From contig CM074821.1 in NCBI GenBank assembly GCA_037447605.1, positions 1,240,001-1,304,000 on the forward strand: 64,000 nt of DNA, read 5' to 3'. Positions 9,315-64,000 of this stretch are shown in pieces; within the stretch, counting starts at the first letter, position 1; the number at the start of each line of letters is the position of its first letter. A program made the translations under genes and the position numbers. Source of the stretch: Zygnema circumcarinatum SAG 698-1b. Lineage: Eukaryota > Plantae > Zygnematophyceae. The notes under the pieces are model-generated. The model had not been told where the DNA came from and searched no databases. It saw only the letters and a list, made by a program, of their open reading frames with translations.

Positions 9315-24778
<15,464 letters not shown>

Positions 24779-24878: not shown

Positions 24879-24906
24879 GTAACAAAAGTTATACGAAGAA
24901 GCGTAC

Positions 24907-26428
24907 CTTATTCTCTTCACAAACTTGAAGTAAGTCTGGTCCCTCGCTCTCGTGTAAATGGACCCTGCGAATAATTGTTGCATCACTCCTCCGCATCTCA
25001 TCAAGCCGAAGCCTTCTTTTAATCGGAGCATCGAAAACTGTGATGGGGAGGCCGGGATTCGAGCGGTTCCATGCCGCCCACCCAGTCATGAAAGTAGACA
25101 TGTCAATGGTCGGAAATTCCCTGCAAATCGCCACGAATAGCGCACCGAATGTGAGTGGTAGTTCTCTCTCTCTATCTCTCTCCTCTAACTCCATATCACT
25201 GTCTCTCTCTCTCTCTCACTCACTGACTATACTTAAATATCTCTCCCCCCCTTGCTCTCCCCCTCTCTCCTATCTCACGCCTCTCCCCGCTTCCACACTC
25301 CACCCCCCAAGTTCTCTCTCTCTTTTCTTTATCTCCTTACCTCTCTCTCTCTATCTCTCACCCACACTCTCTTAATCTCTCTCACCCCCTTGCGCTTCCC
25401 CCCTCCAGTCTCTCTCCCTTCCTATCTCTCCCTCACAGAGGTCACCCCCACCTCCGTAGACGCCAATAATCGAGATATTGCCCGATATTGTTCACAACAC
25501 TCTTCCCGTTTTTGCTCTCTTCCGGAGGAACATAAACTTCAGTGTCGACGACGAGGATGCGATGCAGAGCCATGGCCTCCCCCGCCATGCAGGCCAAGCT
25601 CCGCCGCCGCTGCCCAAAGCCCACTTCAAATTCCTTCCGAGCTCTCGGATAGAGGAGATATTTCTGCTCCGAATCAAACTCATACTCTCCTTTCCAGCTC
25701 CTCCACCACATTGCATATGGAGAAGGGGGAGGTCGTTGTATAAGAGAATCCATGGCTGCCACCTCTCTCTGCTCGATATCTCCCTCACTTCCTTGTTCAG
25801 TGCCCTCTCCCTCTTCCAACATATTCATCTCCTTCTCGAGGTTTTGGCTCTTCCACTTCTTCTCAGAAGAAGCCATGGATTCATTTAGAAATATTCGTTC
25901 TCCATCTCCCTCTCTTTCGATGACTCCCACTACTGCGTCCCTCTCCCTTTCTCTGCTTGTCTCCCTTCCCCCCTCCCCTCTGCTTCCCACCTCCCCTTCC
26001 CCCTCCTCCTCGCCCCCATACTCCCCCATTTCAAACTCCCCCACCTCCTTCACCGTTCCTTCCTCCCTCCCTTCCTCACCTCCATTCTCCTCTTTGCTGA
26101 GCAACCATACTCCTCCTCCCCACCGCTTTCCACTCCTTCCCCAATATCTCACTTTCCTCCCTTCTTCACCCTCCCTCCTCCTTCTCCCCTGGCCATCCCC
26201 CTCCTCTCCCCCCTCCCTCGCCCTCCTCCAGCTCTCCTGCAGAAGCTTCAGGTGCCCCCCCAATCCCTCCCCCATCCCCCCACCCCCCTTCCCCGCCCCC
26301 CAAAGAGCGGGCAGGCTCCCCGGCAGCAGCAAGAGGTGCGCCCCCGCCAGCAACACTATTGCCGCCATCGCCGCCATGGCCGCTACCCAGCCCTGCCCCT
26401 GCCCCCGGCCCTGCCCGTCCCCGGCCAT
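24907..26428 (-). CDS. SUB1/At4g12700-like O-fucosyltransferase-family (GT-B) type II membrane protein, copy L; 3'-partial
   Basis: Exons 26428-25452 and 25120-24907 (phase-consistent). N-terminal TM segment AAMAAMAAIVLLAGAHLLLL and G/E-rich stem. FDSEQKYLLY..SLACMAGEAMALHRILVVD..YLDY matches the SUB1-family KYL.Y..CALGEA.YLNRTLVMD..FYFDF pattern (from memory). Remainder is in the gap. Confidence 0.72.
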
Positions 26429-29450: not shown

Positions 29451-31977
29451 ATGGTGCTAAAAAGTAAATTCCCACAGATTTGCGGTTTTACTGTCAACCT
29501 TTTCTCTTCTATCCTTCTCATTGTCTCGGCCGCCTCCGGGGCCTTCGCTTTACAAATAAGGTTAGTGAACTCAGAAAGAAACTTTCCCCGATGTTGTTGC
29601 TTGTTAACGCTCGTTGATGATGGAGGAGCCCAAAGAGATTTTTAAAGAGCTTCAAGAGCGTGACTGGCGTCACTTGACGCGTTTGAGGTCAGATAGCACT
29701 GCACAGGGAGAAAACGTACACTTCTGAATGTTCTTAAAAAAAACCGACTACATCAATCTACCATACATATGAGTCACACGGCAGTCAATTCCTCTCTCTT
29801 ACTCTCTCTCTCTCACTCTCCCTCCCTCTCCCTCTTCCTTTTCCTCTCCCTCTCCCTCTCCCTCTCCCTCTCCCTTTTCCTCTCCCTCTCCCTCTCCCTC
29901 TCCCACTCCCTCTCCCNNNNNNNNNNCCTCTCCCTCTCCCTCTCCCTCTCCTTCCCCCTCTCCCACTTCTTCTTCTTCTCTATCTCCCTCTCCCTCACTC
30001 TCTCCCTCGCCCCCTCTCCCTCGCTCTCTCCCACTCCCTCTCCCTCTCCCTCTCCCTCTCCTTCCCCTCTTCCCTCGCCCTCGCCCTCGCCCTCGCCCTC
30101 GCCCTCGCCCTCGCCCTCGCTCTCGTCCTCTCCCTCGCTCGCTCTCCTCCCCTCCCTCCCTTATTCTCTCTCTCTCCCTCTCTCTCTCCCCCTCCTCTTC
30201 TCTTTTCTCTGTCACTTTCTTTCTCTCACTCTCTTGCTCTCTCCCCCCCCAACTCCCTCCCTGTCTCCCCCCTCCCCTTTCTCTGACAAGTCACCGCTGC
30301 TTTTCCGACCTGTGCAGTGCGAGTGACCCCAGCCCATTACGAGCTTCCAATCTGCCCAATGCCGTGCCCGTGCCTGTGCCTGTGCTCGCCGCGAGTGAGA
30401 AGGCCCCAAAGAGAGCGGAGGGCGGCGAGGCGGCCAAAGGGGCGCAGGAGGGCGGCGCTCCCCCGCTGGCCATCGACGCCCTTGCGGCGCAGGCGGGGGC
30501 GTTGGGGGCCGCCGCCATCAAGGAGGCGGAGGAGGAGCGGGCGATGCTGGCGGCGCGAGGGGAGGTCTGGGACCGACACGCGCTCGCGGCGGACGAGAAG
30601 CTCGACCTCTGCCAGCAGGCCATGGTGCTCTCCAGGGCGGACCTTCAGGCGGCGGAGGGAGGGGTGCCGCTGCCTTGCGGACTGGCTAAGGGCTCGTCTT
30701 TCACTTTCACGGGGCTCATCTCAAGAAAACGAAAAGACGAGGGGGGAGAAGTGGGCTTCACTTTGGACCTGAAGGTGAGGACACTGCGGAGTTTTATGTG
30801 CCTCGTTCTTCAGATTTGCTGTAATGCATGCACAGTCTTTAAATGCTCAATCATGTAAAGAAATCAAGATTTGTGATGCATGCACAGTCGTAGGATGCTC
30901 AGCATGCGGCTCGACATGCTTTTCCAATGCATGCATGTATGCATGCATGCACTGAGGCTGTGCCTGACATGCTTCCATGGGGGGCTGCCTGCCTGCCTGC
31001 CTGCCTCAGGGTCTGCCTCTTGTGGAGGGCGAGTCCCCCCCCGTGATCCTGCGCCTTCGCGCGGTGCTGCGTGGCGGGGGGGCCGCCATAGAAGGCAACG
31101 CCATGGCTTCTTCTTCTTCTTCTTCTTCTCCTTCTTCTTCTTCTGCGGCCGGCGGCGATGATGGGCGGTGGGGCGCTGCGCAGCGCTGCGAGGGAACCGC
31201 CTCGGACGACGAAACGGCCAAGGGTGGGTCTCATGCCGCCCAACATGGTTCATGGTTGTGGCAGTGTCTTGTGGGGTGCTAGCGTGCGCTTCTAGAGCAT
31301 GAGCATGAGAACAATATTGGGGATAAGGTTAGATGTGACAACAACAAGGGTGTGGTAAAGTGCCGTCAGGCCTTGTTCTGATGTCTTATACGAAATGAAG
31401 GGAGAAGGGATATGGGAGAACATGACGCTGGGTCGGACAATTCGACGAGCTTCCCTGGACAAGGCCACTTCATATTAGGCGGCGCAGGGGCTTCTCTATG
31501 GCAGCACCGTCTGAAATTAGGGTTTGAGTTGCACGGGTGGAGGCGCGTGTTGTGTTCTCCTTCACAGCTGGTAGTAGTGAGCGAAGTTGAAAGACAGGCG
31601 AATGGTGCCTTACTTTCGCGTCCTTAGTGCGACATGTTTCCCATAGTGCGACATGCTGCCCATAGTGCGCCGTTTGTGCGTACATGCGATGTGGGGCAAA
31701 AACGATGATCCCCGTAGTGCGACGTCCATGCGACGAATGACTTGTGATCACGTTGCACTCTGGAGACCGCGTCCTCGTGGTTCCCCTTGATGATGGTTGT
31801 TTCCATGTACATTTGATGGCATCATCGCCATCGTGAGATCAATGCCACTTCCTAAACAAACATCCTGAACAGCATGTTCTTATCCTTTTATCTTGCCCTT
31901 AAGAGTATGTTCTTGTTTTTAATCTCCTAGAAACCCTAACCCTAATATCTGAATTTGTGCCCTCCCACCCCCCCTCC

Positions 31978-32011
<34 letters not shown>

Positions 32012-33434
32012 NNNNNNNNNNGTCTGGGACCGACACGCGCTCGCGGCGGACGAGAAGCTCGACCTCTGCCAGCAGGCCATGGTGCTCTCCAGGGCGGACC
32101 TTCAGGCGGCGGAGGGAGGGGTGCCGCTGCCTTGCGGACTGGCTAAGGGCTCGTCTTTCACTTTCACGGGGCTCATCTCAAGAAAACGAAAAGACGAGGG
32201 GGGAGAAGTGGGCTTCACTTTGGACCTGAAGGTGAGGACACTGCGGAGTTTTATGTGCCTCGTTCTTCAGATTTGCTGTAATGCATGCACAGTCTTTAAA
32301 TGCTCAATCATGTAAAGAAATCAAGATTTGTGATGCATGCACAGTCGTAGGATGCTCAGCATGCGGCTCGACATGCTTTTCCAATGCATGCATGTATGCA
32401 TGCATGCACTGAGGCTGTGCCTGACATGCTTCCATGGGGGGCTGCCTGCCTGCCTGCCTGCCTCAGGGTCTGCCTCTTGTGGAGGGCGAGTCCCCCCCCG
32501 TGATCCTGCGCCTTCGCGCGGTGCTGCGTGGCGGGGGGGCCGCCATAGAAGGCAACGCCATGGCTTCTTCTTCTTCTTCTTCTTCTCCTTCTTCTTCTTC
32601 TGCGGCCGGCGGCGATGATGGGCGGTGGGGCGCTGCGCAGCGCTGCGAGGGAACCGCCTCGGACGACGAAACGGCCAAGGGTGGGTCTCATGCCGCCCAA
32701 CATGGTTCATGGTTGTGGCAGTGTCTTGTGGGGTGCTAGCGTGCGCTTCTAGAGCATGAGCATGAGAACAATATTGGGGATAAGGTTAGATGTGACAACA
32801 ACAAGGGTGTGGTAAAGTGCCGTCAGGCCTTGTTCTGATGTCTTATACGAAATGAAGGGAGAAGGGATATGGGAGAACATGACGCTGGGTCGGACAATTC
32901 GACGAGCTTCCCTGGACAAGGCCACTTCATATTAGGCGGCGCAGGGGCTTCTCTATGGCAGCACCGTCTGAAATTAGGGTTTGAGTTGCACGGGTGGAGG
33001 CGCGTGTTGTGTTCTCCTTCACAGCTGGTAGTAGTGAGCGAAGTTGAAAGACAGGCGAATGGTGCCTTACTTTCGCGTCCTTAGTGCGACATGTTTCCCA
33101 TAGTGCGACATGCTGCCCATAGTGCGCCGTTTGTGCGTACATGCGATGTGGGGCAAAAACGATGATCCCCGTAGTGCGACGTCCATGCGACGAATGACTT
33201 GTGATCACGTTGCACTCTGGAGACCGCGTCCTCGTGGTTCCCCTTGATGATGGTTGTTTCCATGTACATTTGATGGCATCATCGCCATCGTGAGATCAAT
33301 GCCACTTCCTAAACAAACATCCTGAACAGCATGTTCTTATCCTTTTATCTTGCCCTTAAGAGTATGTTCTTGTTTTTAATCTCCTAGAAACCCTAACCCT
33401 AATATCTGAATTTGTGCCCCCCCCCCCCCCCCTC

Positions 33435-33486
<52 letters not shown>

Positions 33487-35687
33487 GCATGCATCCCTTG
33501 CAGTGGACGGTCTGCCGCAGTGCGAGGGCTGGGCGCGAGCCGACGCCTTCAAGGGGAAGCCCTCCGCGTGGGTGCAGCGCTCGGCCCGCAGCAGCGCGCC
33601 TCTGGGCCTGTTCCCGCTGCGCGCCGACCGCGCCTTCGTGCTCACTCTGCGCGCGGGCTTCCAAGGCTTCCATGTCTCCGTCGACGGCCTGCACGTCCTC
33701 TCCTTCCCGTACCGCGCAGTCAGTCTTTCACACAAACCTGCATCAAATGTTGATTGAGCTCTTCCAATTCAGATAACAGACATGGATATCTAGCGTTACT
33801 TCAGAAGCGGGCGTTCATGCTCAATTGACCTTCACAAAGCAATCGCTTGCAGGGCTATGTTACGGAGGAGGCTGCAAGCCTTCACTACGACGGCGACATC
33901 GTTTTTTCCTCTCTGATTGGAGTGTCCCTTCCGCTGCATCCTCCTGTGAAACGGGCAACGCCTTTACAGTCAGATCACCTCAAGGCCCCTCCCCTCAAGG
34001 AGGGCCCCTCGGAGCTTTTCATTGGCATTCTCTCGGCGAGCACCTACTTTGACGCGCGCAGGGCGGTGCGGGAAACATGGATGCAATATCCTTTGATTCG
34101 CTCGGGAGATGTTACTGCACGCTTCTTTATCGGCTTGGTAAGATCCAGTCTGCAATAGACTTCAGGATTTCTTCCGTGAGTGGTGTGAGTGATTCTGATG
34201 TTCCTGAATTAAGCAGAGCAGCTTGACACGTGGGCGATATCATTGTATGTCGAATGTATTGTATTTTGAATGCATAGTCATATTTTTTAGTAGAACTAGA
34301 TAGTAATAGACCCCCTTAGCAACTGTGATTGCGCTTATATTGCATATTTAGTGCTTGATTTTGGTGGAATATCGCGATGTCTGGAGGGCAACAGCATTCC
34401 AGCAAACAGGTCAATGTGGAGACCCTAAAGGAGAGGGAGTACTTCCAAGACATGGTGGTGCTGCCCTTCATCGATAACTACGACTTGGTGGTTTTAAAGA
34501 GCTATGCACTCTGCGAATGGGCTGTAAGTTCTTTCTCAAAAGCAGCATTCCTTTTTGCTTGACTTCATCAGGGAGGCGATGATGGGATCACTGATGCTGC
34601 AGGAAAGTGTTACAGATGATGTTTCGTTACATTTCAGTTAGATCATTGACCTGCAGCTTGCCGCAGGAAGTTCTGCACCTGCACGTGCAAGTTATAAGAG
34701 AACTCATGCATGGTTCTGCATGTAAAGGATTTCAGCTTTCCCTCTGTGCAGAGCTTTCATACTTCAAATTCCTGAACTTGGAGATGTAACCCTCCCATAT
34801 TTTAGCTCCTTATGTTTACCCCCCCCCCAATTGTTCAAACGATGCCTGCAGTTGGAGCACACGCAAGCGAAGTACGTCATCAAGGTCGATGATGACAATT
34901 TCGTGCACTTAGATCGCGTTCTTGAGAACATAAAATATGTGAATTTCAAGAACAGTCTTTACATGGGCAACATGAACAGGGGGCACTACCCGCAGCGTGA
35001 AGGGAAATGGGCAGTCACATTGGAGGTGAGGGGCAACTTTTAGGGTTTCCTGGGTCATCTTTTTGCTCCTTTGTATATTTTAGGGGTCTCGGTTGTGATT
35101 TTGAAGTGTCGCGCTTTTGAAGTAGCCTTCATTTCTTCTGATTTCGTTTCTTCAAATATTGAGATTGTTGGAGCTTTGGGATGCAGGAGTGGCCGAACAA
35201 GCCCTACCCTCCCTATGCGAACGGGCCGGGATACATTCTCAGTCGAGACATAGTCGAATTCATAGTTCGCTTGAAAAAGAGGGACCAATTACGGGTACTT
35301 TTCGCTTGCCTCCTCCTCTTGACTCCTTCAGAAAACACTCATTGGTTTTCCACCCTTGTCTGTTCTCCAGTTTATGAGCCGCTTATTCTTGTTACATGCG
35401 TGAAGATATGACTGCAACAGCTTTGATAGAAGCCTGAAAAGGGTTTGTATGGTTTTTAATGGGTCCCTTTTTTATGGTCTTTGCAGATCCACAAAATGGA
35501 AGATGTGACAGTCGGCATGTGGGTGGTGCAATACAGCATCAACCAAACTGTAAATTACGTTCACAACTGGCGGTTCTGCCAGTTCGGCTGCATGGAAAAC
35601 TTCATCACAGCTCACTACCAGAACCCGCGCCGGATGCTCTGCTTATGGGAGAAGGTGCAGCAAGGAGACGAGAGCTGCTGCGACTAA
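29451..35687 (+). CDS. GALT: Galectin-domain GT31 galactosyltransferase (Hyp-O-galactosyltransferase GALT2-6-like), copy L, 9 exons, 630 aa
   Basis: Exons 29451-29560, 30318-30774, 31010-31223, 33504-33718, 33853-34137, 34395-34523, 34852-35025, 35187-35294, 35487-35687 (1893 nt, phase-consistent once the 1457-bp gap-flanking duplicate is ignored). Signal anchor, [86 protein letters not shown]...TAHYQ.PR.M.CLW. Confidence 0.93.
30565..33480. other. Apparent 1457-bp direct duplication across a 10-N gap (probable unmerged contig overlap)
   Basis: 30565-32011 is repeated at 32022-~33468. ORF translations are identical in the track, and both units end in a (CT)n tract beside the gap. Confidence 0.75.
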
Positions 35688-38462: not shown

Positions 38463-40730
38463 ATGCTCATTGTCTCCCGCATGTCCTCCTTCACCGGCGT
38501 CTCCTTCTCCCTCGCCAACGCGGTCCTGCTGCTCGCGCTCTATTGGTTGCTGCTGCGGCCGCAGCCCGACACGGGGCAGCTGCGGGAGGCCCGCGACCCG
38601 CCGCTGCTTCAGCAGCAGAAGATGATATTGGAGCTCTCCCTGGGTCCTGCATCGCTGCTCTTTCCCCTTCCCTCTCCCCCTCTCTCTCCCTCAGCCCTTC
38701 GCATCCCCCTTCCCCCTTCCCCTTCCCCTTCCCCTCCCCTTCTTCTACCTTCTCCCCCTCCCACTTCCCCTGCACCCCCCCCTCCCCTTCTCCCTCACGA
38801 TCCCTCTCCCTCCCCCGCTCCCTCTTCCCCTCCCTCCCCCGTTCCCTCTCCCTCTCCCTTTCCCGCTTCCTCTCCCTCTCCCTCGTCCTCTCCCTCTTCC
38901 TCTCCCTCTCCCTCTCCCACTTCCGCGGCGCTCTCTCCTCCTGCACCCCCCCCTCCCCCTCTTCCTTGTCCGCCATGGCGCACCGGCCGCGGGGAGCAGA
39001 GCTTCGACCCCTCCTCGAAGTACCTCTACTACAAGCGCCACCCGAACGACTTCTTCGTCGGCGCGAGCCACCGCAAGTGGAGCGTCGCGTGCATGGCGGG
39101 GGAGGCCCTGCTGCTCCGCCGCGTGCTCGTGGTCGACATGGAGGTCGGCGTCCCGGCCTCGCACAACAACGGGACCGCCACGAGAAGGAAGGCGGAGCAG
39201 TACTACGACATTCAGTACATGCGCAGGTAGAGAGAGGAGGAGGGAGGGGGGGAGGGAGGAGGAGGGAGGGAGGGGTGCTGGAGGGAGGAAGGGAGGGGTG
39301 CTGGAGGGAGGGAGGGAGGGAGGGGCGCTGGAGAGAGGGAGGGGGGTTCTCGGGTGCGAGGGAGAGAGGGGGGGTCTCGGGAGAGCTTGATGCTTTGTTT
39401 CGTCTTTAAATCCTTTTGACGACAGAAGGATTTTATCAGTATAGCCGGTAGTTGTGAAGAATGATTAAGCAATTAACTTAAGGTCAAGTTTTTGAATACT
39501 AAAATGACAAAGTGAACTACAGTAATGAAGTCGCGAAGAAGACGGTTATTCGTTTCAGGTTCAACATAGTCCTGCTTTCACTTTCGCTTACTAAAATAAT
39601 GACCGGATTGCCGTCTTTTTCGTTTGCTGTTCTCGCTAAACTAATGAAATCACAGCATTTAAGAAGCAAATATTGGCACACGCAGACAGAACAGCCTGTC
39701 TATACTGCGACTGTTTAGATTAATCGATATTTGAACTAACACAACCTTTTCTTCATCAGTTAGGGCAAAATCTCCGAATCAAAAGCAGCGTGTCTCCCAA
39801 TCTGCATAGACCTCGCGGTAGACAGATTTTGCAAGTATCCCTCCCTCTCCCTCTCCCACTCACTCTCTTGCAGTGCCAACAGACGTAATGAGATGGTATT
39901 GAACATGGAAAGGGAAAATAATAAAAACCCCATTTCCCGGCGTTATCTGTTTGCGCATGTTCTACCGCGTATAAAACCGAAAGCAGTTATAAGTAAATTA
40001 TTGTCACTTCTATGTTACTAAGATTACTTTTTTTTCTCTGCGGAATTAAGACAATTACAGCTAACACACTAAACTTCAATATGCGATTCTATACATAAAC
40101 TAGAGAAGCATCATTCATTGATCTCATATTGTCACCTATACTCCACTGCAGCAGTGGGTTGAAGATTTCAGTGTTATTTTAAGAAGGAAGAGAGTCTCAG
40201 CACAGCTTTCCAGTAAATAAAGTTCTGAGAAGGTTGGCTTGGCTTCAAAAAGCGACTGACTAATGAAAAAATTGTCTCATACTCAACCATTTCATCGTGG
40301 ACTCTTCACTTAACGCCCCCTTAAACGTTTGGAACTTCAAACGAGTTCCCTTTAAAATGACCCACAGACTCACATTCTGACACATACATAACTATTATAA
40401 CTATTATTATTATCAGAACTATTATTATTATACTTTTACTCATTATGGCACGTATTGTACAAGTATATTATCTCAGTCCATTCAATTTGTTAGTGTCGCT
40501 AAGACCTATCCAAAGCATGCAGATTCTTCCCTATCATCGAGATGCCCACATTCTTGGAAGGCTGGAAAGCATGGGATGAAGCTCACCCTGACCAGAAGGT
40601 CACAGCTTTGAGAGCATCAATCACGAAAGGTCCCCTCCTTGGTCGCCTCCAATCCAGCAACGCCACGATCATCGTGCACACGTACAAGGAAAAAAACGAC
40701 TTTGCATACGTGTGCTGCAGGCGGAACAAG
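38463..40730 (+). CDS. SUB1/At4g12700-like O-fucosyltransferase-family protein, divergent third paralog (copy M); 3'-partial
   Basis: Exons 38463-39226 and 40523-40730, with the same intron positions and phases as copies L/R. TM segment AVLLLALYWLLL, Pro/Ser-rich stem, FDPSSKYLYY..SVACMAGEALLLRRVLVVD..YYDI, then FPIIEMPTFLEGWKAWD..S.ATII..VC..NK. Later exons not found before the gap at 41663. Confidence 0.72.
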
Positions 40731-40799
40731 GTGAGCCTTGACCAGCTCGCCGTCTGTTCTTCTTACGCTTCTAGCTTGCAAGATCTGCGGGTGTTGCGG

Positions 40800-41662
40800 A
40801 GAAAGAGGGGGAGAGAGAGGGGGGACAGAGAGGGGTGAGGGGGAGAGAGGGGGGAGAGAGGGGGGACAGAGGGGGGAGAGAGAGGGGTAGAGAGAGGGGG
40901 GACAGAGAGGGGGAGAGAGAGGGGTACAGAGAGGGGGGACAGAAGGGGGGAGAGAGGGGGAGAGAGAGGGGGAAGAGAGGGGGAGAGAGAGGGGGAGAGA
41001 GAGGGGGCCTCAGAGGGGGGGAGGGAGAGGGGGAGAGAGAGGGGGGACAGAGAGGGGGGAGAGAGAGGGGTAGAGAGAGGGGGGACAGAGAGGGGGGAGA
41101 GAGAGGGGGAGAGAGAGGGGGGACAGAAAGGGGGGAGAGAGGGGGGACAGAGAGGGGGGAGAGAGAGGGGTAGAGAGAGGGGGGACAGAGAGGGGGGACA
41201 GAGAGGGGTAGAGAGAGGGGGGACAGAAAGGGGGGAGAGAGAGGGGGAGAGAGAGGGGGAGAGAGAGGGGGAGAGAGGGGGAGAGAGAGGAGGGACAGAG
41301 AGGGGGAGAGAGAGGGGGAGAGAGAGGGGGCGAGAGAGGGGAAGAGAGAGGGGGGACAGAAAGGGGGGAGAGAGGGGGGAGAGGACAGAGGGGGAGAGAG
41401 AGGGGGATTAGAGAGGGGGAGAGAGGGGGGAGAAGAGAGGACAGAGAGAGGGGGAGAGAGAGAGGGGTAGAGAGAGGGGGGACAGAAAGGGGGGAGAGAG
41501 GGGGAGAGAGAGGGGGAAAAGAGAGGGGGGAGAGAGAGGGGGAGAGAGAGTGGGGTCAGAAAGGGGGGAGAGAGGGGGAGAGAGAGAGGGGGGACAGAGG
41601 GGGAGAGAGGGAGAGAGGGGGGACAGAGGGGGAGAGGGGGAGAGGGGGGACAGAGGGGGAGA
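40800..41662. repeat. GA-rich (GAGAGGGGG/GACAGAGGGGG) minisatellite tract running into a scaffold gap
   Basis: ~860 bp of near purine-only repeat units. Confidence 0.9.
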
Positions 41663-43477: not shown

Positions 43478-46400
43478 ATGGCTGCTGCGGAGGGAGCTGC
43501 GCGAGGACTTGCAGGGCGACGGGGACGACGGCATGGTCGCAAGCTGGAGGAGAGAGGGGAGGGCGGGCAGGGACTCTCCCTCCGAGTGGGAGGCGCGCTG
43601 GTTGCAGGAATAGCGCTGGCACTCCTTCTGGCAGGGCATGCGGGAGCGGGATGGAGGGTGGAGGCAGAGAGGCTGTGGGAGGAAGGGAGGGACCAGCGAG
43701 AGGGAGGCCTGCAGGAGAGTGGCGGAGAAGGAGGGGGGACTTTTTCTTCTGAAGAGTCTCTCGGCGGAAGGCATCTGCTTTACAAGCGGGGGAGGGGGAG
43801 GGGGAAGTCTTACCCTAAGCTGGGGCCATGGCCGGTAAGAATTCGCTTCTGAGAGTCCTGAGGCAGGAATTTTAATTAGGATCGAAGGCACATCCTTACA
43901 GTTATGAAATCGAACGAATGCGTGCACTTGAGCTGAGTTATGATGGAGTGGAACTCCTTCAGTAGGGTCATAGTAAACAGCAGCATCAGCTACAGTGAAA
44001 TTTGAAAGGGGTTGAAGCTATCAGCTTTCGGTGCTTTCTGTTGCCTTTGTGGATACGTGGAGTTGGCCTTGCTGCGCTCCTGCTATTGTTCGCCTTGTTA
44101 GGGCTAAGTCTATGGTGGACTTAAATACCTTTGGAGGAAATCGCGCAAGAAAGAAGAAAGTGATTGAAAGTGCGCATGAAGTGCGCAATCGTTGGGGAAC
44201 AATAGTCTACGTCCTAATGTCCATTCTATCTGCTGCAGGGCGTTGATTTGTCTTATGTAGGCAGTCATATGCGACGGCACTATCGATTTTTAGACCTCAA
44301 AGCGAAGAGATGCGGATTAATTCGAGATTTGAGGGGGCTGTTGTGGAACGACCACGCCAACTATGATAACTTAACCAGATGGAAAAGTCCGGCTATCCCG
44401 GGATCTATGTTCGACCATACAATAAGCTTTCGCTATCCGGAGGACAAAGAAGTGGAACGAACTCCTCCGTCATACACACTTCAAAGTATCCAGGTGAGAA
44501 AAGAGTGCAGGAGGTGTTGTTGCAAGAACAACAGGTGAAAATAACCGAGCATCTGCAGTGGGGTTAATGAGACACTAAGTTTGATATCCTGATTAGCCTC
44601 TGAGGGGACAGCAGTGACTGCCCTGTTCAAGGGCTACATTCCATGCAAACATCATTCTGCAGTGTGGCGCTGAAAAAATGGGAGCGATTATTAAATTATT
44701 CTCTTGGCTATATGAGTTTCTCTTGAATGCAGTGCACTGTCCTTCTTCGGGGTGTTGACTACGAGAAGCTGAGAGATTGTCCTCTTGTGAAACAAAGGCC
44801 ATTTGACGGAGAAGTAGTTGCACCGCGCGTCGAGCCGGACGAGCAGCTCACTCTCATAGCCGTGGTCTTTCCGCAGGTGACCCGCCACGACCTCCGGCTG
44901 AGAACCATCAGACTCCGTTTGGATGGCAAATTTGCATGAAGCTGACCAGACTCAGAGCTGCGACTTCGTTCCATTGCCATTTTTCACCGCGTTCTCGATT
45001 GCTCTCTCACTGCTTCTCCTGTAGACGGTGCCCCCTAGCTTGATCTGTGGCCTTTGACAGCTGCAGTGCCGCTACTTTCTTGGCAGTATCACGCCTTCGA
45101 GAAGAACAACCAGTTTTGGGGCACCAACTTCACGGAGTGGTCGAACCTGAAGTTGGCCTTCTTCAACCCCTGGACGCTGCAGACCATCAAGCACCCCATC
45201 AGCAGCCATGGCGGCTACTACAACTTTCTGGATCACGACCAGCGCCAACTCACAGGGCGCTTGGCGAAGCATTACGGAATTGGGGTGAGCACAGGCTCAA
45301 CAAAATGCCCAACATGGAGTTTGCTTTATGAGGCAACTGAATCTGCAACGTAGAGTGCAATGAAACGAAGCTGTTTCAGAGAAATCATGTTTCCGTTTGC
45401 TGGGAAGTTGGGTTTCAGGGTTTGGCTTACCACCACTATTGGTATAATTGCGACACGCGATTCATGGAAGAGCCTCTCCTGCGCATTTTGGAAGATGGAG
45501 AACCAGACCTTCCCTTCTCTTTCATTTGGGCCAATCACGCTTGGACGCGTGTCTGGGATGGCTTCAATGGAGAGGTCCTCCAAGATCAGGTGAGATGCAC
45601 TGGCGAGCCGTCGAGAGCCACCGCAACCAGTAGCATGCACACACACACACACACACAACTCCGCACACTGGAATGGGTACATCGAATCTACCGAAATAGA
45701 TTACTCCCTCACACGTGAAGCTCCTCTTGCCTTTTTGCTCACGCTGCAGAAGTACGGAGAAGAGCATTGCTGGCGTCGGCATTTTGAGTGGCTCCTGCCC
45801 TTTTTTTTGAAAGCCCAAAGTACATCAAAGTCAACGGAAAACCTCTATTCGTGTTCTATGTCCTACACGAAATCCCTCCAGGAGTGTTTGAAGCCATGGT
45901 GGCTCTCTGGCGGGAGCTCGCAGTAGAGAAGGGACTTCCGGGATTGCACATAGTGCAGTCCCTCAATTTGTGGGACACCGAGGTTTCCCCTGTTGTAGAC
46001 GCTGTGATGGAGTACCAACCCAACATGCGGCGCGCCTATGTGAAGCATCAGACAGAAGCTCGGGCTGAGAAAAGGATGCACCCCACGCACTACAGAGGCG
46101 AGTATTTGGGATGGGATAACTTTCCAAGGCATAATTCAGAGCTTGGATATGTGAACGGGGGCTTTGACGACGACCCCATCCATGTGGAGGCGAGGCTGAG
46201 GCATCGGATGAGGGTGGCAAGGAGGGACCCCAACAAGGAGACTCCCAACCTCTTCTTTCTCACCGCTTGGAACGAGTGGGGGGAGGGGAACAATCTCGAG
46301 CCTGACAACGTGTTCGGGTAAGCGACGGTCCACTTGACCTAAAGTCAAGGAAGGGGGGGGCAGAGAGTGGGAGAGGGAGGAAGGCTAGGGAGGATCAGAA

Positions 46401-47873
46401 TGGGACTGGTTTCAACTCTACAACGAGTCGTATGGATAATAGGAATTTTAGTTCATCTACTGCGGCAGTTCGGCCGATTCAGCTGTTTTGAGTAGAACTC
46501 ATCACTGGGAAGGAGGCTGGGTCCACACTGCAGACCGATTGAGATCTTGAGAAATTCAGAATTCAATGTTATTTTTAAAACACGTTCACATGCTCAAAAG
46601 TTAAGCTTTACTCGGTGGGTAAGGGGTAAGCTGCACCACCAAGAAGTCCCGTAAAGTCACCTGAAGTAGACCTCGTGATGATCTAGTTTTTTCCAGACTG
46701 ACTGTTCCCTCTACCTTCCTCCTTTCTTTCTCTCCCCTCTTCCTGCCTTCCTCAGATCGCTTCCTCCACCTCTCACTCTTGCCTTTCTGAGGAAGCGACA
46801 ACTGAACCAAAACCTTTTGTCTAGACAGGTCCATCGGAATGGACACTTCTGTTTGAAGGCCTGACACGAGAAGATTGTCAAACTCAGTTTTTCAGTTCAG
46901 GCTTTTATTATGTGTCGTAAGTGGCCCATGGCATATTTAAGCTAGTCATTAGGCAAAAATCTGATCGCGTTTTTCTGAAAGAGTATTGGTTCTTCAATGG
47001 AAGTTTGATTAGCCGCTTTGTCGTTTGTCCAACCTAAATTAAGTGACATATGGCAACTACAATAATGACGGGCTCTTAGACGAACAGAAGGAATACAGCA
47101 GAAGAGTGATTTTTTCATTTATTTCACTTTTACTTCCCGCCTACAAGACTGAAACATCTGAACTGGCGGTACTCCTGGCTTACCCTTGGAGTCCATTTCT
47201 TGAGCATTCTCCTCCTTGAGCACGCAGAACCATATCTTGCAACTGCCGATGGATAAATGAGTTGGCTCCACTTCTACTCCTCGAGTAATTGAACCCTGAT
47301 TCGTAGTGTATTAGGAACTAGATGCTCTCGTCAGCCTGCACTTTAGGGAGGTTTTAGAGACTCCAGCCTCTTTTGCAGTTACCCATTCTTACTGACTGTT
47401 TATGGTTTGCCGTTCTTGTGAATGGTTCTCCCTGTTTAAACTTCAGATATGGCAACTTGAATGCTGTGGCATCTGCATACACCCGCAGCAAGGCTCCCTA
47501 CGAAACATTAAGCGACAAGCAAGTGTTGGAGCGCCTTATTGGAAGCATGGAAAGCTGCAAATTAGTGCTTGACATCATTTTGTATACACAGACGTATGAC
47601 ATCGACTTCCGGCAGTATGGATCCTACAGTGAGTGGGAGGGGCCCAAAAACTCAACGGAAATGCGTTATTCCATGATGTCCAAGCGACGGCAAAAATATG
47701 CCGAGCATTGGCAGGAGGTAGGCTTCTTCTTAGGCCGAGAATTTCGCCTCATTTCGAATTCGGAAGCGTTGGAAAACGGGGCCCCTCGTTTGAAATTGTG
47801 TAAATTGTTGATGAATGCCATTCTAGACAAAGTAGTTGTCCGATATTACTTTGAACTAGTTGACGAATCTTAG
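43478..47873 (+). CDS. WbsX-family (Glyco_tran_WbsX / GH99-like fold) glycosyltransferase with N-terminal membrane anchor, 7 exons, ~705 aa if the T8 frameshift at 45801-45808 is corrected
   Basis: Exons 43478-43834, 44239-44493, 44733-44876, 45087-45284, 45419-45589, 45750-46317, 47447-47873, all GT-AG. Motifs in family order: LIAVVFPQYH..NNQFWG..FTEW.N; GYYN..LAKHYGI.G..Y.HYW; EPDLPFSFIWANHAWTRVWDG; Q.YG..HFEWLLPFF.SPKYIKVNGKP; WDNFPR; FLTAWNEWGEGNNLEPD..FGYG.L.AV. Confidence 0.88.
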
Positions 47874-52358: not shown

Positions 52359-54539
52359 TTAGTCGCAGCAGCTCTCGTCTCCTTGCTGCACCTTCTCCCA
52401 TAAGCAGAGCATCCGGCGCGGGTTCTGGTAGTGAGCTGTAATGAAGTTTTCCATGCAGCCGAACTGGCAGAACCGCCAGTTGTGAACGTAATTTACAGTT
52501 TGGTTGATGCTGTATTGCACCACCCATATGCCAACTGTCACATCTTCCATTTTGTAGATCTGCAAAGACCATAAAAAAAGGACCCATTTCAGGCTTCTAT
52601 CAAAGCTGTTGCAGTCATATCTTTACACATGTAACAAGAATAAGCGGCTGATAAACTGGAGAACTGAAAAGGGTGGAAAACCAACGAGTGTTTTCAGAAG
52701 GAGTCAAGAGGAGGAGGCAAGCGAAAAGTACCCGTAATTGGTCCATCTTTTTCAAGCGAACTATGAATTCCACTATGTCTCGACTGAGAATGTATCCCGG
52801 CCCGTTCGCATAGGGAGGGTAGGGCTTGTTCGGCCACTCCTGCATCCCAAAGCTCCAACAATCTCAACATTTGACGAAAAGAAATCCGAAGAAATAAACG
52901 CTACAAAAATCACAACCGAGACCCCTAAAATATACAGAGCAGCAAAAAGTTGACCCAGGAAACCCTAAAAGAATATGTCTGCAAGCCCCCCCTCACCTCC
53001 AGTGTGACTGCCCATTTCCCTTCACGCTGCGGATAGTGCCCCCTGTTGATGTTGCCCATGTAAAGACTGTTCTTGAAATTCACATATTTTATGTTCTCAA
53101 GAACGCGATCTAAGTGCACGAAATTGTCATCATCGACCTTGATGACGTACTTCGCTTGCGTGTGCTCCAACTGCAGGCATCGTTTGAACAAGAGGGGGGG
53201 GGGGGGGGGTAAAACATAAAGAGGAGCTAAAATATGGGAGGGTTACATCTCCAAGTTCAGGAATTTGAAGTATGAAAGCTCCGCACTGAGGGAAAGCTGA
53301 AATCCTTTACATGCAGAACCATGCATGAGTTCTCTTATAACTTGCACCTGCAGGTGCAGAACTTCCTGCGTCAAGCTGCAGGCCAATGACCTAGCTGAAA
53401 TGTAACGAAACATCATCTGTAACACTTTACTGCAGCATCAGTGATCCCATCATCGCGTCCTTGATGAAGTCACGCAAAAAGGAATGCTGCTTCAGAGAAA
53501 GAACTTACAGCCCATTCGCAGAGCGCATAGCTCTTTAAAACCACCAAGGCGTAGTCATCGATGAACGGCAGCACCACCATGTCTTGGAAGTACTCCCTCT
53601 CCTTTAGGGTCTCCACATTGACCTGTTTGCTGGAATGCTATTGCCCTCCAAACATCGCGATATTCCACCAAAATCAAGCACTAAATATACAATATAAGCG
53701 CAATCACAGTTGCAAGGGGGTCTTTTATTATCTAGTTATACTCAAGAATATGACTATGCATTCAAAATACAATACATTCGACGTACAATGATATCGCCAA
53801 CGTGTCAAGCTGCTCTGCTTCAGGAACATCAGGATCACTCACACGACTCACGGAAGGAATCCTAAAGTCTATTGCAGACTGAATCTTACCAAACCGATAA
53901 AGAAGCGTGCAGTAACATCTCCCGAGCGAATCAAAGGATATTGCATCCATGTTTCCCGCACCGCCATGCGCGCGTCAAAGTAAGTGCTCGCCGAGAGAAT
54001 GCCAATGAAAAGCTCCGAGGGGCCCTCCTTGATGGGAGGGGCCTTGAGGTGATCTGACTGTAAAGGAGTTGCCCTTTCCGCAGGAGGGTGCAGCGGAAGG
54101 GACACTCCAACCAAAGAGGAAAAAACGATGTCCCCGTCGTAGTGAAAGCTCGCAGCCTCCTCCGTAACATAGCCCTGCAAGCGATTGCTTTGTGAAGGTC
54201 AATTGAGCATGAACGCCCGCTTCTGAAGTAACGCTAGATATCCATGTCTGTTATCTGAATTGGAAGAGCTCAATCAACATTTGATGCAGGTTTGTGTGAA
54301 AGACTGACTGCGCGGTACGGGAAGGAGAGGACGTGCAGGCCGTCGACGGAGACATGGAAGCCTTGGAAGCCCGCGCGCAGAGTGAGCACGAAGGCGCGGT
54401 CGGCGCGCAGCGGGAACAGGCCCAGAGGCGCGCTGCTGCGGGCCGAGCGCTGCACCCACGCGGAGGGCTTCCCCTTGAAGGCGTCGGCTCGCGCCCAGCC
54501 CTCGCACTGCGGCAGACCGTCCACTGCAATGGATGCATG

Positions 54540-54586
<47 letters not shown>

Positions 54587-55832
54587 GGGGGAGGGGGGGG
54601 GGGGNNNNNNNNNNTGCATGAGTTCTCTTATAACTTGCACCTGCAGGTGCAGAACTTCCTGCGTCAAGCTGCAGGCCAATGACCTAGCTGAAATGTAACG
54701 AAACATCATCTGTAACACTTTACTGCAGCATCAGTGATCCCATCATCGCGTCCTTGATGAAGTCACGCAAAAAGGAATGCTGCTTCAGAGAAAGAACTTA
54801 CAGCCCATTCGCAGAGCGCATAGCTCTTTAAAACCACCAAGGCGTAGTCATCGATGAACGGCAGCACCACCATGTCTTGGAAGTACTCCCTCTCCTTTAG
54901 GGTCTCCACATTGACCTGTTTGCTGGAATGCTATTGCCCTCCAAACATCGCGATATTCCACCAAAATCAAGCACTAAATATACAATATAAGCGCAATCAC
55001 AGTTGCAAGGGGGTCTTTTATTATCTAGTTATACTCAAGAATATGACTATGCATTCAAAATACAATACATTCGACGTACAATGATATCGCCAACGTGTCA
55101 AGCTGCTCTGCTTCAGGAACATCAGGATCACTCACACGACTCACGGAAGGAATCCTAAAGTCTATTGCAGACTGAATCTTACCAAACCGATAAAGAAGCG
55201 TGCAGTAACATCTCCCGAGCGAATCAAAGGATATTGCATCCATGTTTCCCGCACCGCCATGCGCGCGTCAAAGTAAGTGCTCGCCGAGAGAATGCCAATG
55301 AAAAGCTCCGAGGGGCCCTCCTTGATGGGAGGGGCCTTGAGGTGATCTGACTGTAAAGGAGTTGCCCTTTCCGCAGGAGGGTGCAGCGGAAGGGACACTC
55401 CAACCAAAGAGGAAAAAACGATGTCCCCGTCGTAGTGAAAGCTCGCAGCCTCCTCCGTAACATAGCCCTGCAAGCGATTGCTTTGTGAAGGTCAATTGAG
55501 CATGAACGCCCGCTTCTGAAGTAACGCTAGATATCCATGTCTGTTATCTGAATTGGAAGAGCTCAATCAACATTTGATGCAGGTTTGTGTGAAAGACTGA
55601 CTGCGCGGTACGGGAAGGAGAGGACGTGCAGGCCGTCGACGGAGACATGGAAGCCTTGGAAGCCCGCGCGCAGAGTGAGCACGAAGGCGCGGTCGGCGCG
55701 CAGCGGGAACAGGCCCAGAGGCGCGCTGCTGCGGGCCGAGCGCTGCACCCACGCGGAGGGCTTCCCCTTGAAGGCGTCGGCTCGCGCCCAGCCCTCGCAC
55801 TGCGGCAGACCGTCCACTGCAATGGATGCATG

Positions 55833-61037: not shown

Positions 61038-63938
61038 ATGGCCGGGGACGGGCAGGGCCGGGGGCAGGGGCTGTGCTGGGTGGCGGCCATGGCGGCCATG
61101 GCGGCAATCACGGCCATGGTGGCGATAGTGGTGCTGACGGGGGCACACCTCCTGCTGATGCCGGGGAGCCTGCCCGCACTCTGGGGGGCGAGAAAAGGGG
61201 GGGGGGGGGTGGGGGAGGGATTGGCGGGGCAGCTGAAGCTGCTGCAGGAGAGCTGGATGAGGGCGAGGGAGGGGGAAGAGGGGGGGGGAGGCCAGGGGGG
61301 AAGGGGGAAAGAGGATGAAGGAGGGAGAAAAGTGAGAAATTGGGGAGGAAGGAGGGGAAAGCGGTGGGGAAGAGGAGGAGTATGGTTGGTCAGCAAAGAG
61401 AAAAAAGGAGGTGAGGGAGAGGGGGAGGAAGGAACGGTGAAGGAGGTGAGGGGATTTGATATGGGGGAGTATGGGGGAGAGGAGGAGGGGGAGGGGGAGG
61501 GGGAGGTGGAGGTGGGGAGCAGAGGGGAGGGGGAAAGGGAGGCAAGGGAAAGTGAGAGGGACGCAGTAGTGGGAGGCAGCGAAAGAGAGGGAGATGGAGA
61601 ACGAATATCTCTCAATGAATCCATGGCTGCTTCTGAGAAGAAGTGGAAGAGCCAAAATCTCGAGAAGGAGATGAATATGTTGGAAGAGGGAGAGGGCACT
61701 GAACAAGGAAGTGAGGGAGATATCGAGCAGAGAGAGGTGGCAGCCATGGATTCTATTATACAACGGCCTCCCCCTTCTCCATATGCAATGTGGTGGAGGA
61801 GCTGGAAAGGAGAGTATGAGTTTGATTCGGAGCAGAAATATCTCCTCTATCCGAGAACTCGGAAGGAATTTGAAGTGGGCGTTGGGCAGCGGCGGCGGAG
61901 CTTGGCCTGCATGGCGGGGGAGGCCATGGCTCTGCATCGCATCCTCGTCGTCGACACCGAAGTTTATGTTCCTCCGGAAGAGAGCAAAAACGGGACGAGT
62001 GTGGTGAACGATATCGGGCAATATCTCGATTATTGGCGTCTACGGAGGTGGGGTTGATCTCTGTGAGGGAGAAATAGGAAGGGAGAGAGACTGGAGGGGG
62101 GAAGCGCAAGGGGGGGGGAGAGATTCAGAGAGAGCGGATGAGAGAGAAAGAGAGAGAGGTAAGGAGTTAAAGAACTTGGGGGGTGGAGTATGGAAAAGGG
62201 AAAAGGCGTGAGATAGGAGAGAGGGGGAGAGCAAGGGGGGGAGATATATTTAAGGATAGTCAGTGAGTGAGAGAGAGAGTGAGACGGAGATATGGAGTTA
62301 GAGGAGAGAGAAGAGAGAGAGAGAACTTCCACTCACATTCTGTGCGTTATTCGTGGCGATTTGCAGGGAATTTCCCACCATTGACATGTCTACTTTCATG
62401 ACTGGGTGGGCGGCATGGAACCGCTCGAATCCCGACCACCCCATCACATTTTTCGATGCTCCGATTGAAAGAAGACTGCCGCTTGATGAGATGCGAAGGA
62501 GTGATGCAACAATTATTCGCAGGGTCCACTTAAACGAGAGCGAGGGACCGGACTTACTTCAAGTTTGTGAAGAGAACAAGGTTCGCTTTCTCGTAATACT
62601 TTTGTTATGACTTAGTATCTGTCTCATGAAGTCTACTTGTTATTATTACCGTTCAAAGTATTCGGCTCGTTTCATCCTTTCAGGACTGGTACTTACTTCG
62701 TCCTCTCTAGTAGTGCAAAATTATTTGAATAATGTTTTTGCATTGTTTTTGATGATACGGATCAGGAAATTGAAAGGCCGGTAGATGCTGTCAGATATGC
62801 CCCTCTCCTGGTGAAGGTGGCGGAAAAAATCCGCGGCTTGTTGCCGCAACACTTTGTGTCGGTGAGGGTGGAGANNNNNNNNNNGGGAGAGGGAGAGGGA
62901 GAGGGAGAGGGAGAGGGAGAGGGAGATCTCCTCTCACTTGTCTGCATTTCCCCCCTCCATCTCATTTTCCTTATTTCCTAACACTCTGCTGATGGTTTTC
63001 ATTCTTGTTGGCTTTTCTTTTGGGTTTTATTTGTTTTCCATTTTAACCTCCTGAGCAAGGATTCGACATATTCAAGTGAATCCATTGCTTGCTGCTTTAT
63101 CCTCCCACAGTTACTTGTGCTCTCGTGATTGTCTCCTCACACTCTCTACTCCTCCCATTTGTGCACGTTCCTTTCCACACTCTCCACTTTCACGGATTGG
63201 AAATTGGAAGGATAAAAAATAAGGTAAAGCAAGAGAGAGAGAGAGAGGTAGAGGGTGAGGGAGAGAGGGTGAGGGAGAGAAGAGTGGAAGTGAGAAAGAG
63301 AGAAAAGAGAGAGAGTGAGAGAGAGTAGTAGTTCATGCATATAGACGATCTCCAGCGGAGAAGCCGTACACCCCACTGCCTTCTATTCCTCGTCAGCTCC
63401 TTCCAATTCTCTCCCCTCCTCTCCCTCTTTCTCTCTCGCTCTCCATGCGTCTCTCCCTTCTCTCCTTCCATATAACATCTTTGCCTGCAGCAAGTAGCAA
63501 TTAGAAGCACGCTTTGACATGTTTCAGTTTGCTGGCAGCCCTTTGACGAAAAAAAAATAGGAATAGTGGGGTAAATCACAACGCTGGAGAGAGAGAGAGA
63601 GAGAGAGTAGGAGAGAGAAAGGGAAGCGGGAATTACTTATGAGTTAAGCTTAGCATCTCTAACAATATCGTGGTTATTCTGTCCTGTCATTGATTTTTGT
63701 TGTGCTATCTTGCAGCATATCGCATGTACTGGCCCAAAAAGGAGTTGCTCCTAAAGCGACAGTGTGGATAATTACAGACGAGAACGACCCCGACTTCTTT
63801 TTTAAGCTGAAGGGACTCTATGCATGCAAGTTTCTGGACGACTTTTCGAAGCTGTGGGAGTCGCACAGTCAGTGGTGGATCGACATGAGGGAGATATGCG
63901 GAGAGGGCTGCAGGCCCGCCATGGATGGCTTCATGCGG
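61038..63938 (+). CDS. SUB1/At4g12700-like O-fucosyltransferase-family protein, copy R; runs off the window end
   Basis: Exons 61038-62047, 62367-62580, 62766-62861 and 63716-63938. The last encodes VWIITDENDPDFFFKLKGLY..KFLDDFSKLWESHSQWW..DGFMR, matching the SUB1-family YIATNEP..FF..LK..Y..FLD.FK.LW..S.W..FDGYMR motif (from memory). A short exon with the H..RGD catalytic motif is missing, probably in the 62875 gap. Confidence 0.8.
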
Positions 63939-64000
63939 GTCAGCTTGCTTGACTTCATTGCTCTATTCTCTCTATCGGTTAAGCTTTTAAAACACCCTTT

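Follow-up and report, generated by a model that had tools for sequence, protein, structure and literature searches.

The window analysed here, the whole 64,000-nucleotide stretch of the Zygnema circumcarinatum SAG 698-1b genome (contig CM074821.1, positions 1,240,001 to 1,304,000), carries on its forward strand a seven-exon gene for a protein of the WbsX family (PF14307, Glyco_tran_WbsX), in which a membrane anchor and a stem are predicted ahead of the catalytic-type domain. All six introns begin with GT and end with AG, and they lie in phases 0, 0, 0, 0, 0 and 2. The exons (E1 to E7) and their main contents are as follows, in window coordinates.

43478-47873, forward strand: the whole gene, seven exons and six introns, with the stop codon at 47871-47873
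43478-43834, forward strand: E1, with the start codon, an arginine-rich N-terminal tail of 32 amino acids, the membrane segment and the glycine/glutamate-rich start of the stem; defined by an open reading frame (ORF) and a GT donor at 43835, the 5' part being covered in run X20
about 43574-43636 (residues about 33-53), forward strand: membrane segment within E1, called by hydropathy
44239-44493, forward strand: E2, a conserved stem module with the motif W.D...SP.IPGSMFDH.ISFRY; its 3' end (44437-44491) is mis-assembled
44733-44876, forward strand: E3, the last part of the stem together with the opening strand of the domain (LIAVVFPQ)
45087-45284, forward strand: E4, WbsX profile positions 9-71 (YH..N..WG.NFTEW), Pfam E = 1.7e-8
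45419-45589, forward strand: E5, WbsX profile positions 73-128 (HHYW, WANHAW), Pfam E = 2.9e-17
45750-46317, forward strand: E6, remaining barrel including the catalytic-type motif NEWGEG..EP, with an assembly frameshift at the T run 45801-45808
45809-46315, forward strand: E6b, the main part of E6, Pfam E = 1.5e-23
47447-47873, forward strand: E7, last barrel helix (YGNLNAVA.AY), a C-terminal extension of about 125 amino acids and the stop codon

Membership in the WbsX family is supported by exon-wise profile searches, in which the exons were scanned singly and not as a joined protein. At a Pfam cut-off of 25.1 bits, PF14307 scored 34.7 bits on E4, 63.6 on E5 and 84.3 on E6b, and positions 9-341 of its 350 were covered in order by E4 to E6, with the FPQ start of the domain in E3. 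A local hidden Markov model (HMM) of the family tiled the exons in the same order (8-70, 72-127, 128-146 and 148-327), leaving neither gaps nor overlaps. Of 54 columns in which 12 or more of 13 family sequences agree, 51 retain their residue in this gene, the exceptions being an E-to-K change, an F-to-Y change and an E-to-H change in the WANE motif; in E3, the invariant FPQ motif keeps its P and Q. Judged from these matches, the domain is complete and ordered, and the gene is best read as a further member of a known, uncharacterised family. The original prediction, which had noted the full ordered WbsX motif set spread over GT-AG introns and had proposed a search for a PF14307-type match, is borne out on this point by the three exons above the cut-off. 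E7 had no Pfam match, and its C-terminal extension is restricted to the algal clade described below, being helical with falling confidence in the structural model of a Closterium ortholog.

Splicing and expression were assessed with contigs from four public runs of four studies, two of DNA and two RNA-like (X20 and X7). The joints 43834/44239, 44876/45087, 45284/45419, 45589/45750 and 46317/47447 are present exactly in RNA-like contigs, two of them (44876/45087 and 46317/47447) in both X20 and X7, and the joint across intron 2 is present as well, with variant letters. Since the RNA-like runs carry these joints and the contigs of the two DNA runs hold none of them, the gene is spliced and expressed. 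It is a nuclear, intron-bearing, expressed gene and not contamination, as had been argued earlier from the introns.

In the assembly, E6 measures 568 nucleotides and a run of eight T at 45801-45808 breaks the frame between ...LLPFF and ESPKYIKV, while the 3' end of E2 is out of register with the Closterium ortholog. Taken at face value, such an E6 and E2 would suggest a pseudogene, a reading that is highly improbable in light of the runs: in all four, the contig crossing the T run has six T instead of eight, which restores the frame (...LLPFFESPKYIKV...), and the base at 44437 is missing from the reads. Reads covering 44472-44491 lack two further bases, a net change of minus three nucleotides over 44437-44491, and the resulting E2 end (...SKYQ/C, the slash here and below marking an intron position) is closer to that of the Closterium ortholog (...KNYQ/C) than is the version in the window. 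Conserved residues are also kept on both sides of the frame break, and the gene is spliced and has high contig depth. Because all four DNA and RNA-like runs read the shorter T run and the corrected E2, the T8 run and the three extra single bases in 44437-44491 are taken as assembly errors, and the gene is intact. Both the pseudogene and the contamination readings were rejected on this read evidence.

The N-terminal part of the protein resembles that of type II Golgi glycan enzymes. On the Kyte-Doolittle scale, the hydrophobic segment LSLRVGGALVAGIALALLL averages 2.12 across 19 amino acids, a call made with this simple hydropathy scale and not with a dedicated predictor, and the 32 residues ahead of it contain eight K/R against four D/E, in keeping with the positive-inside rule. 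A stem of about 190 amino acids lies between the segment and the domain; the membrane segment noted earlier is thus upheld, and the stem is longer than the approximately 170 amino acids first given for it. The predicted order of basic tail, single N-terminal membrane segment, stem and catalytic domain is the pattern of a type II Golgi glycan enzyme. N-terminal anchors also precede the domain in most of the fungal homologs examined, in the green alga Raphidocelis, in a Closterium paralog and in several unlabelled relatives; the sampled single-domain proteins are anchor-less. Since homologs from fungi, a chlorophyte and Closterium commonly have it too, the anchor is not an innovation of the Zygnema gene, and the retargeting to the secretory pathway proposed earlier, if it occurred, did not take place in this lineage.

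The fold assigned to the domain comes from profile comparison and from an AlphaFold model built for the Closterium ortholog instead of the Zygnema protein. The family profile matches the GH99 endo-alpha-mannosidase 4acz of Bacteroides thetaiotaomicron (E = 9e-7), and the profile alignment places the family motif NEWgEg, which is NEWGEG in this gene, on NEWHEG of 4acz. Counted from the printed end of the alignment, the two glutamates of 4acz are E329 and E332, the GH99 catalytic pair, and both glutamates of the motif are invariant in all 80 WbsX family sequences compared. In the ortholog model, the barrel (residues 100-410) mostly has a predicted local distance difference test (pLDDT) score above 90 and the stem is disordered. 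A Foldseek search with this model returned GH99 entries for its top 33 matches, save one "glycoside hydrolase-like protein", and VIA-align superimposed it on human MANEA and bacterial GH99 with Z scores of 19-20 and a root-mean-square deviation of 3.0 A over about 247 residues; values were lower for GH71 (Z about 15) and for other barrels (Z about 12). The barrel is therefore modelled as a GH99-like (beta/alpha)8 barrel in which both GH99 catalytic glutamates are kept. The Pfam GH99 model matched no exon at E <= 1, and the ortholog sequence, compared directly with solved structures, gave no match, GH99 being reached by the family profile only; because there is no Pfam GH99 match and the link is at profile level, the domain is described as GH99-like and not as a GH99 member. 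An ESM Atlas feature search recovered bacterial WbsX clusters only.

The papers found on WbsX offer mutants of a multidomain O-antigen protein and annotation tables; the role of the domain is drawn from gene context and mutants. In the papers searched there was no biochemical assay of a WbsX domain, and the literature searches yielded no study of WbsX proteins from eukaryotes or viruses. The designation "glycosyltransferase" in the original prediction is accordingly a family name derived from gene context, and the fold and catalytic motif of the domain are GH99-like.

The closest relatives of the gene occur in the desmid Closterium. A HMMER scan with E6b against 1.84 billion representative proteins gave 1943 matches, and in the 150 top matches listed the best were unnamed proteins of Closterium sp. 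NIES-64 (P0001, 60% identity over E6b) and Yama58-4 (48%), followed by proteins of bacterial metagenome-assembled genomes (MAGs) and of chytrid fungi at 36-47% identity. The Yama58-4 protein P0158 aligns to E2 through E7, with 64% identity over E2 (its residues 2-56) and 68% over E4; identity between E7 and the Closterium orthologs is 40%. When mapped on its genome, P0158 has introns at the same five positions and in the same phases as the Zygnema gene, namely the boundary between exons 2 and 3, FPQ/YH, YGI./G, LQ.Q/ and the split glycine codon before YGNLN. In the same Yama58-4 locus (L144, CANIUD010000008.1), an exon that is missing from the annotation and encodes a strong membrane segment lies at about 2514-2950, upstream of the ortholog; the ortholog model there includes a spurious non-GT-AG intron (4311-4418), and the intron at 3211-3281 is of the GC-AG type. 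No counterpart of the Myb gene downstream of the Closterium ortholog was matched in the 64-kb window, so synteny was not recovered through it.

An older paralog group comprises the Closterium proteins P0002 and P0156 and an environmental contig (L150). This group carries an N-terminal anchor of its own and shares the stem motif and the FPQ/ intron with the ortholog. The environmental contig, an ENA metagenome scaffold (GROS21-1), carries a paralog-type gene with a membrane-segment exon, the stem motif and introns at FPQ/ and YIK/V, and its source is probably a further streptophyte-like alga. From the ortholog and the older paralog together it follows that not only the gene but also the anchor, the stem and the majority of the introns are older than the split of this alga from Closterium.

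The wider distribution of the family was surveyed with word-index searches using Closterium and Raphidocelis queries, each of which was limited to the 8000 candidates with the most words in common with the query. Named matches came from Closterium strains, many Pezizomycotina, chytrids, Raphidocelis (two copies), Ectocarpus and bacteria, and Closterium and Raphidocelis were the only named green organisms among them. In four large searches, no land-plant relative was found among the named matches (the 8000 best candidates per word search and the top 150 of the 1943 HMMER matches), nor did Klebsormidium, Chara, a bryophyte, an angiosperm or any other named streptophyte appear there, with the limit that some algal genomes may be absent from the databases. 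In GTDB, at least 581 species genomes from many phyla hold a relative, and IMG/VR contains 58 loci, 21 of which are on giant-virus MAGs. The family is thus very common in bacteria, and its earlier description as best known from bacteria and not standard in angiosperms agrees with these searches.

Several unlabelled close relatives have glycan genes of eukaryote type as neighbours, on contigs that are densely packed and free of introns. On four such contigs (L082, L083, L084 and L085), up to three WbsX genes accompany GT29, GT10, GT90, GH125, DUF5672 and GINT1_N genes, and contig L083 also encodes a mitochondrial carrier, a ribonucleotide reductase and an SNF2 helicase; judged by these neighbouring genes, the contigs look like glycan islands of giant viruses.

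Phylogenetic analyses were based on E6b alone (169 amino acids), with E4 and E5 added as separate rows in an overview tree. In this FastTree overview of 367 rows, the Zygnema exons and Closterium form a clade with a support of 99, and this algal clade is part of a larger one of 61 rows (97), in which every labelled row is from a fungus, Raphidocelis or Closterium. An IQ-TREE analysis of 78 rows under LG+C20 recovers the algal clade at 100/100, with E6b joined to P0158 and P0001 at 99/91, and collects the 22 sampled labelled bacteria into one clade (100/99) with the algae outside it. A further split (96/86) separates algae, fungi and Raphidocelis, together with giant-virus-like sequences, from bacteria, Ectocarpus and unlabelled rows. 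After the addition of 49 viral rows, Raphidocelis is placed with giant-virus sequences (97) and Ectocarpus with viral sequences (98), and none of the 49 joins the algal clade. On these trees, recent transfer from any sampled bacterium is ruled out. The epithet "bacterial-type" is not supported as it stood for this gene, whose nearest relatives are the Closterium proteins (60-68% identity) and whose clade lies outside all sampled labelled bacteria.

Intron positions are shared beyond the algal clade. Raphidocelis has a phase-0 intron exactly at FPQ/YH, as do the Zygnema gene, both Closterium paralogs and the environmental contig, and a phase-0 intron at YIK/V is common to the Closterium paralog, the environmental contig and the chytrid Fimicolochytrium. 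With few introns per gene and about a thousand slots, the chance of each coincidence is approximately one to a few per cent. These shared introns are at CAG/ and AAG/GT, which are good proto-splice sites where parallel gain is easier. They nevertheless point to an intermediate or ancestor among eukaryotes more readily than to independent captures from bacteria.

Gene structure, expression, family membership, the fold of the ortholog, the conserved motif and the nearest relatives are shown by the data above, and from them we infer the following topology, compartment, chemistry and route of origin. The protein would reside in the secretory pathway as a type II membrane protein (N-in, C-out), with a short basic cytosolic tail and one membrane segment, followed by a luminal stem of about 190 amino acids with its conserved module, a catalytic WbsX (beta/alpha)8 barrel and the helical tail of the algal clade. 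The enzyme may work in the Golgi lumen, where it would build or remodel a cell-wall or glycoprotein glycan through GH99-type acid/base chemistry. It might do so by transfer or transglycosylation, which would accord with the family name and the bacterial gene context, or by endo-glycosidic cleavage, the activity of GH99 enzymes. The gene belongs to a small streptophyte-algal clade that had already duplicated into two paralogs, and already possessed introns and an anchor, before Zygnema and Closterium diverged. This clade would be grouped with anchored fungal and chlorophyte homologs and with the giant-virus homologs that cluster with these, and it is nested in no sampled bacterial clade. The gene would accordingly be an ancient arrival in the algae, passed on laterally by another eukaryote or a giant virus, or else an old eukaryotic gene retained in a patchy way. 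Overall, an intact, expressed, anchored WbsX/GH99-like Golgi enzyme of old origin is regarded as a reasonably probable reading of the locus.

Several observations weigh against this reading. The localisation, topology and activity of eukaryotic members are predicted only. The glutamate of the WANE motif is replaced by histidine (WANHAW, E5), a change seen in 6 of 80 family members. The joint between E1 and E2 is present in one run only, in an X7 contig with a 28-nucleotide side and a depth of 26 against more than 100 for later exons, and an RNA-like contig of X20 (depth 23.5) joins 43570 to 44238 with non-canonical ends (GG..CA), which skips the part of E1 coding for the membrane segment and gives an out-of-frame product. 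As to the trees, many rows have no taxon label and the backbone is weak, support for algae plus fungi being 83 in one sample and 0 in another.

The origin of the gene has two further possible explanations. A direct donor is possible, in which a bacterial WbsX gene was transferred into an algal ancestor and then gained six introns and an anchor exon; this course of events seems unlikely. The family is overwhelmingly bacterial and the named matches of the large searches hold no land plant, as described above, and in the careful maximum-likelihood tree of 78 rows the algal clade is weakly (73/28) sister to a group that contains the bacteria. In the approximately unbiased (AU) test on the same rows, a clade of algae and bacteria costs 3.6 log-likelihood units and is left unrejected (p = 0.109), which also weighs against the preferred reading. 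However, the algae are nested in no bacterial subclade, the labelled bacteria forming a well-supported clade of their own, and the layout of anchor plus domain is common to fungal and chlorophyte homologs, as are intron positions to a chlorophyte and a chytrid. Furthermore, the highest bacterial identities (30-44%) are not above those of fungi or giant viruses. The interpretation initially proposed is supported in part: the gene is real, nuclear and anchored, and the family is patchy and, among the named matches, apparently missing from land plants. A direct bacterial donor is a possible source that the trees do not single out.

Alternatively, the gene could be an old vertical inheritance of eukaryotes or of the green lineage, lost many times, including in land plants, with no transfer into the algae, an account to which we assign a modest chance, well below even. 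It draws on the phase-0 FPQ/YH intron found from Zygnema and Closterium to Raphidocelis, on the N-terminal anchors seen across fungi, a chlorophyte and the algae, and on the placement of chytrids beside ascomycetes, which resembles vertical descent. Nevertheless, the distribution is extremely patchy, with Closterium and Raphidocelis as the only named green matches; Raphidocelis groups with giant-virus sequences and not with the streptophyte clade, and the proto-splice character of the shared intron sites makes their parallel gain easier.

The gene lies in the unique 16.6-kb centre of an inverted duplication, whose arms (about 25.3-35.7 kb and 52.3-62.2 kb) are 92-97% alike over eight matched blocks. 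The features recognised in and around the arms are listed below.

34726-35684, forward strand: GT31 (Galactosyl_T) gene in the left arm
52362-53242, reverse strand: GT31 (Galactosyl_T) gene in the right arm
24892-25215, reverse strand: recurrent exon with the motif FP.I.M.TF..GW.AW
40503-40835, forward strand: recurrent exon with the same motif
62302-62607, forward strand: recurrent exon with the same motif
63663-63998, forward strand: exon grouped with these recurrent exons, at the place of a DUF7075 exon (63.7 kb)

A glycan-gene cluster around the WbsX gene had been suggested; the GT31 gene in each arm partly agrees with it. The recurrent exons, which had been labelled "FucT-like" in an earlier note, are of an unnamed family and gave no Pfam match. 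Two exact tandem duplications lie inside the arms, at 30565-32321 and 53322-54914, with periods of 1457 and 1293 nucleotides, respectively. On the forward strand at 9315-23844, long ORFs encode Tudor (PTM/DIR17), DDT, PTM-chromo and PHD domains and probably represent a PTM-like chromatin or transcription-factor gene. The long ORFs near the WbsX gene, which are GA-rich and of low complexity, mostly had no Pfam match.

A broader conjecture, which we hold to be quite unlikely at present, is that the anchored WbsX/GH99-like proteins of desmids, fungi and a chlorophyte, with the giant-virus homologs that cluster with them, constitute one undescribed class of glycan enzymes of the secretory pathway, carried from host to host by giant viruses or parasitic chytrids. 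In Zygnema, such an enzyme might act together with GT31 and the other glycan genes of the 37-kb palindrome on a lineage-specific wall glycan or arabinogalactan-type glycan.

The preferred reading, an anchored WbsX/GH99-like enzyme of old origin, has consequences for annotation and for the study of gene transfer. A family annotated throughout as bacterial O-antigen "glycosyltransferases" also exists in anchored, intron-bearing and expressed form in close algal relatives of land plants, and it is found in fungi and giant viruses and carries GH99-type catalytic residues; the family name may mislead annotation. For gene transfer into streptophyte algae, the locus is a cautionary case, as patchy spread and a "bacterial" Pfam name are insufficient to name a bacterial donor. 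Orthologs are already present, unnamed, in public Closterium genomes. Closterium can be cultured and genetically manipulated, and the function is therefore testable.

Compared with known systems, the GH99 endo-alpha-1,2-mannosidases, represented by the Bacteroides GH99 enzyme and by human Golgi MANEA, have the barrel fold and the N-E-W-x-E-G motif with both glutamates in common with the WbsX protein, but are only about 15% identical to it. MANEA is a type II Golgi protein. The bacterial PF14307 proteins of O-antigen and rhamnan loci contain the same domain with all hallmark motifs at 30-44% identity; unlike the Zygnema gene, they are intronless, often fused to RgpF, GT2, GT4 or methyltransferase modules and, in those sampled, devoid of an N-terminal anchor. 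The fungal "glycosyltransferase WbsX-domain-containing proteins" of chytrids and Pezizomycotina, which are uncharacterised, consist of an N-terminal anchor, the WbsX domain and a long C-terminal region. They fall on the same side of the main tree split as the algae and have one intron position in common between a chytrid and the Closterium paralog, but their identity is 30-35% and their sister relation to the algal clade is inconsistently supported. The Closterium orthologs, annotated as "unnamed protein product" (CAI5978491.1 of NIES-64 and P0158 of Yama58-4), differ in that their public models are faulty, lacking exon 1 and being fused to a downstream Myb_DNA-bind_7 gene. They are the nearest known counterparts, with 60-68% identity in the core, the same stem module, the same C-terminal tail and five intron positions in common with the Zygnema gene.

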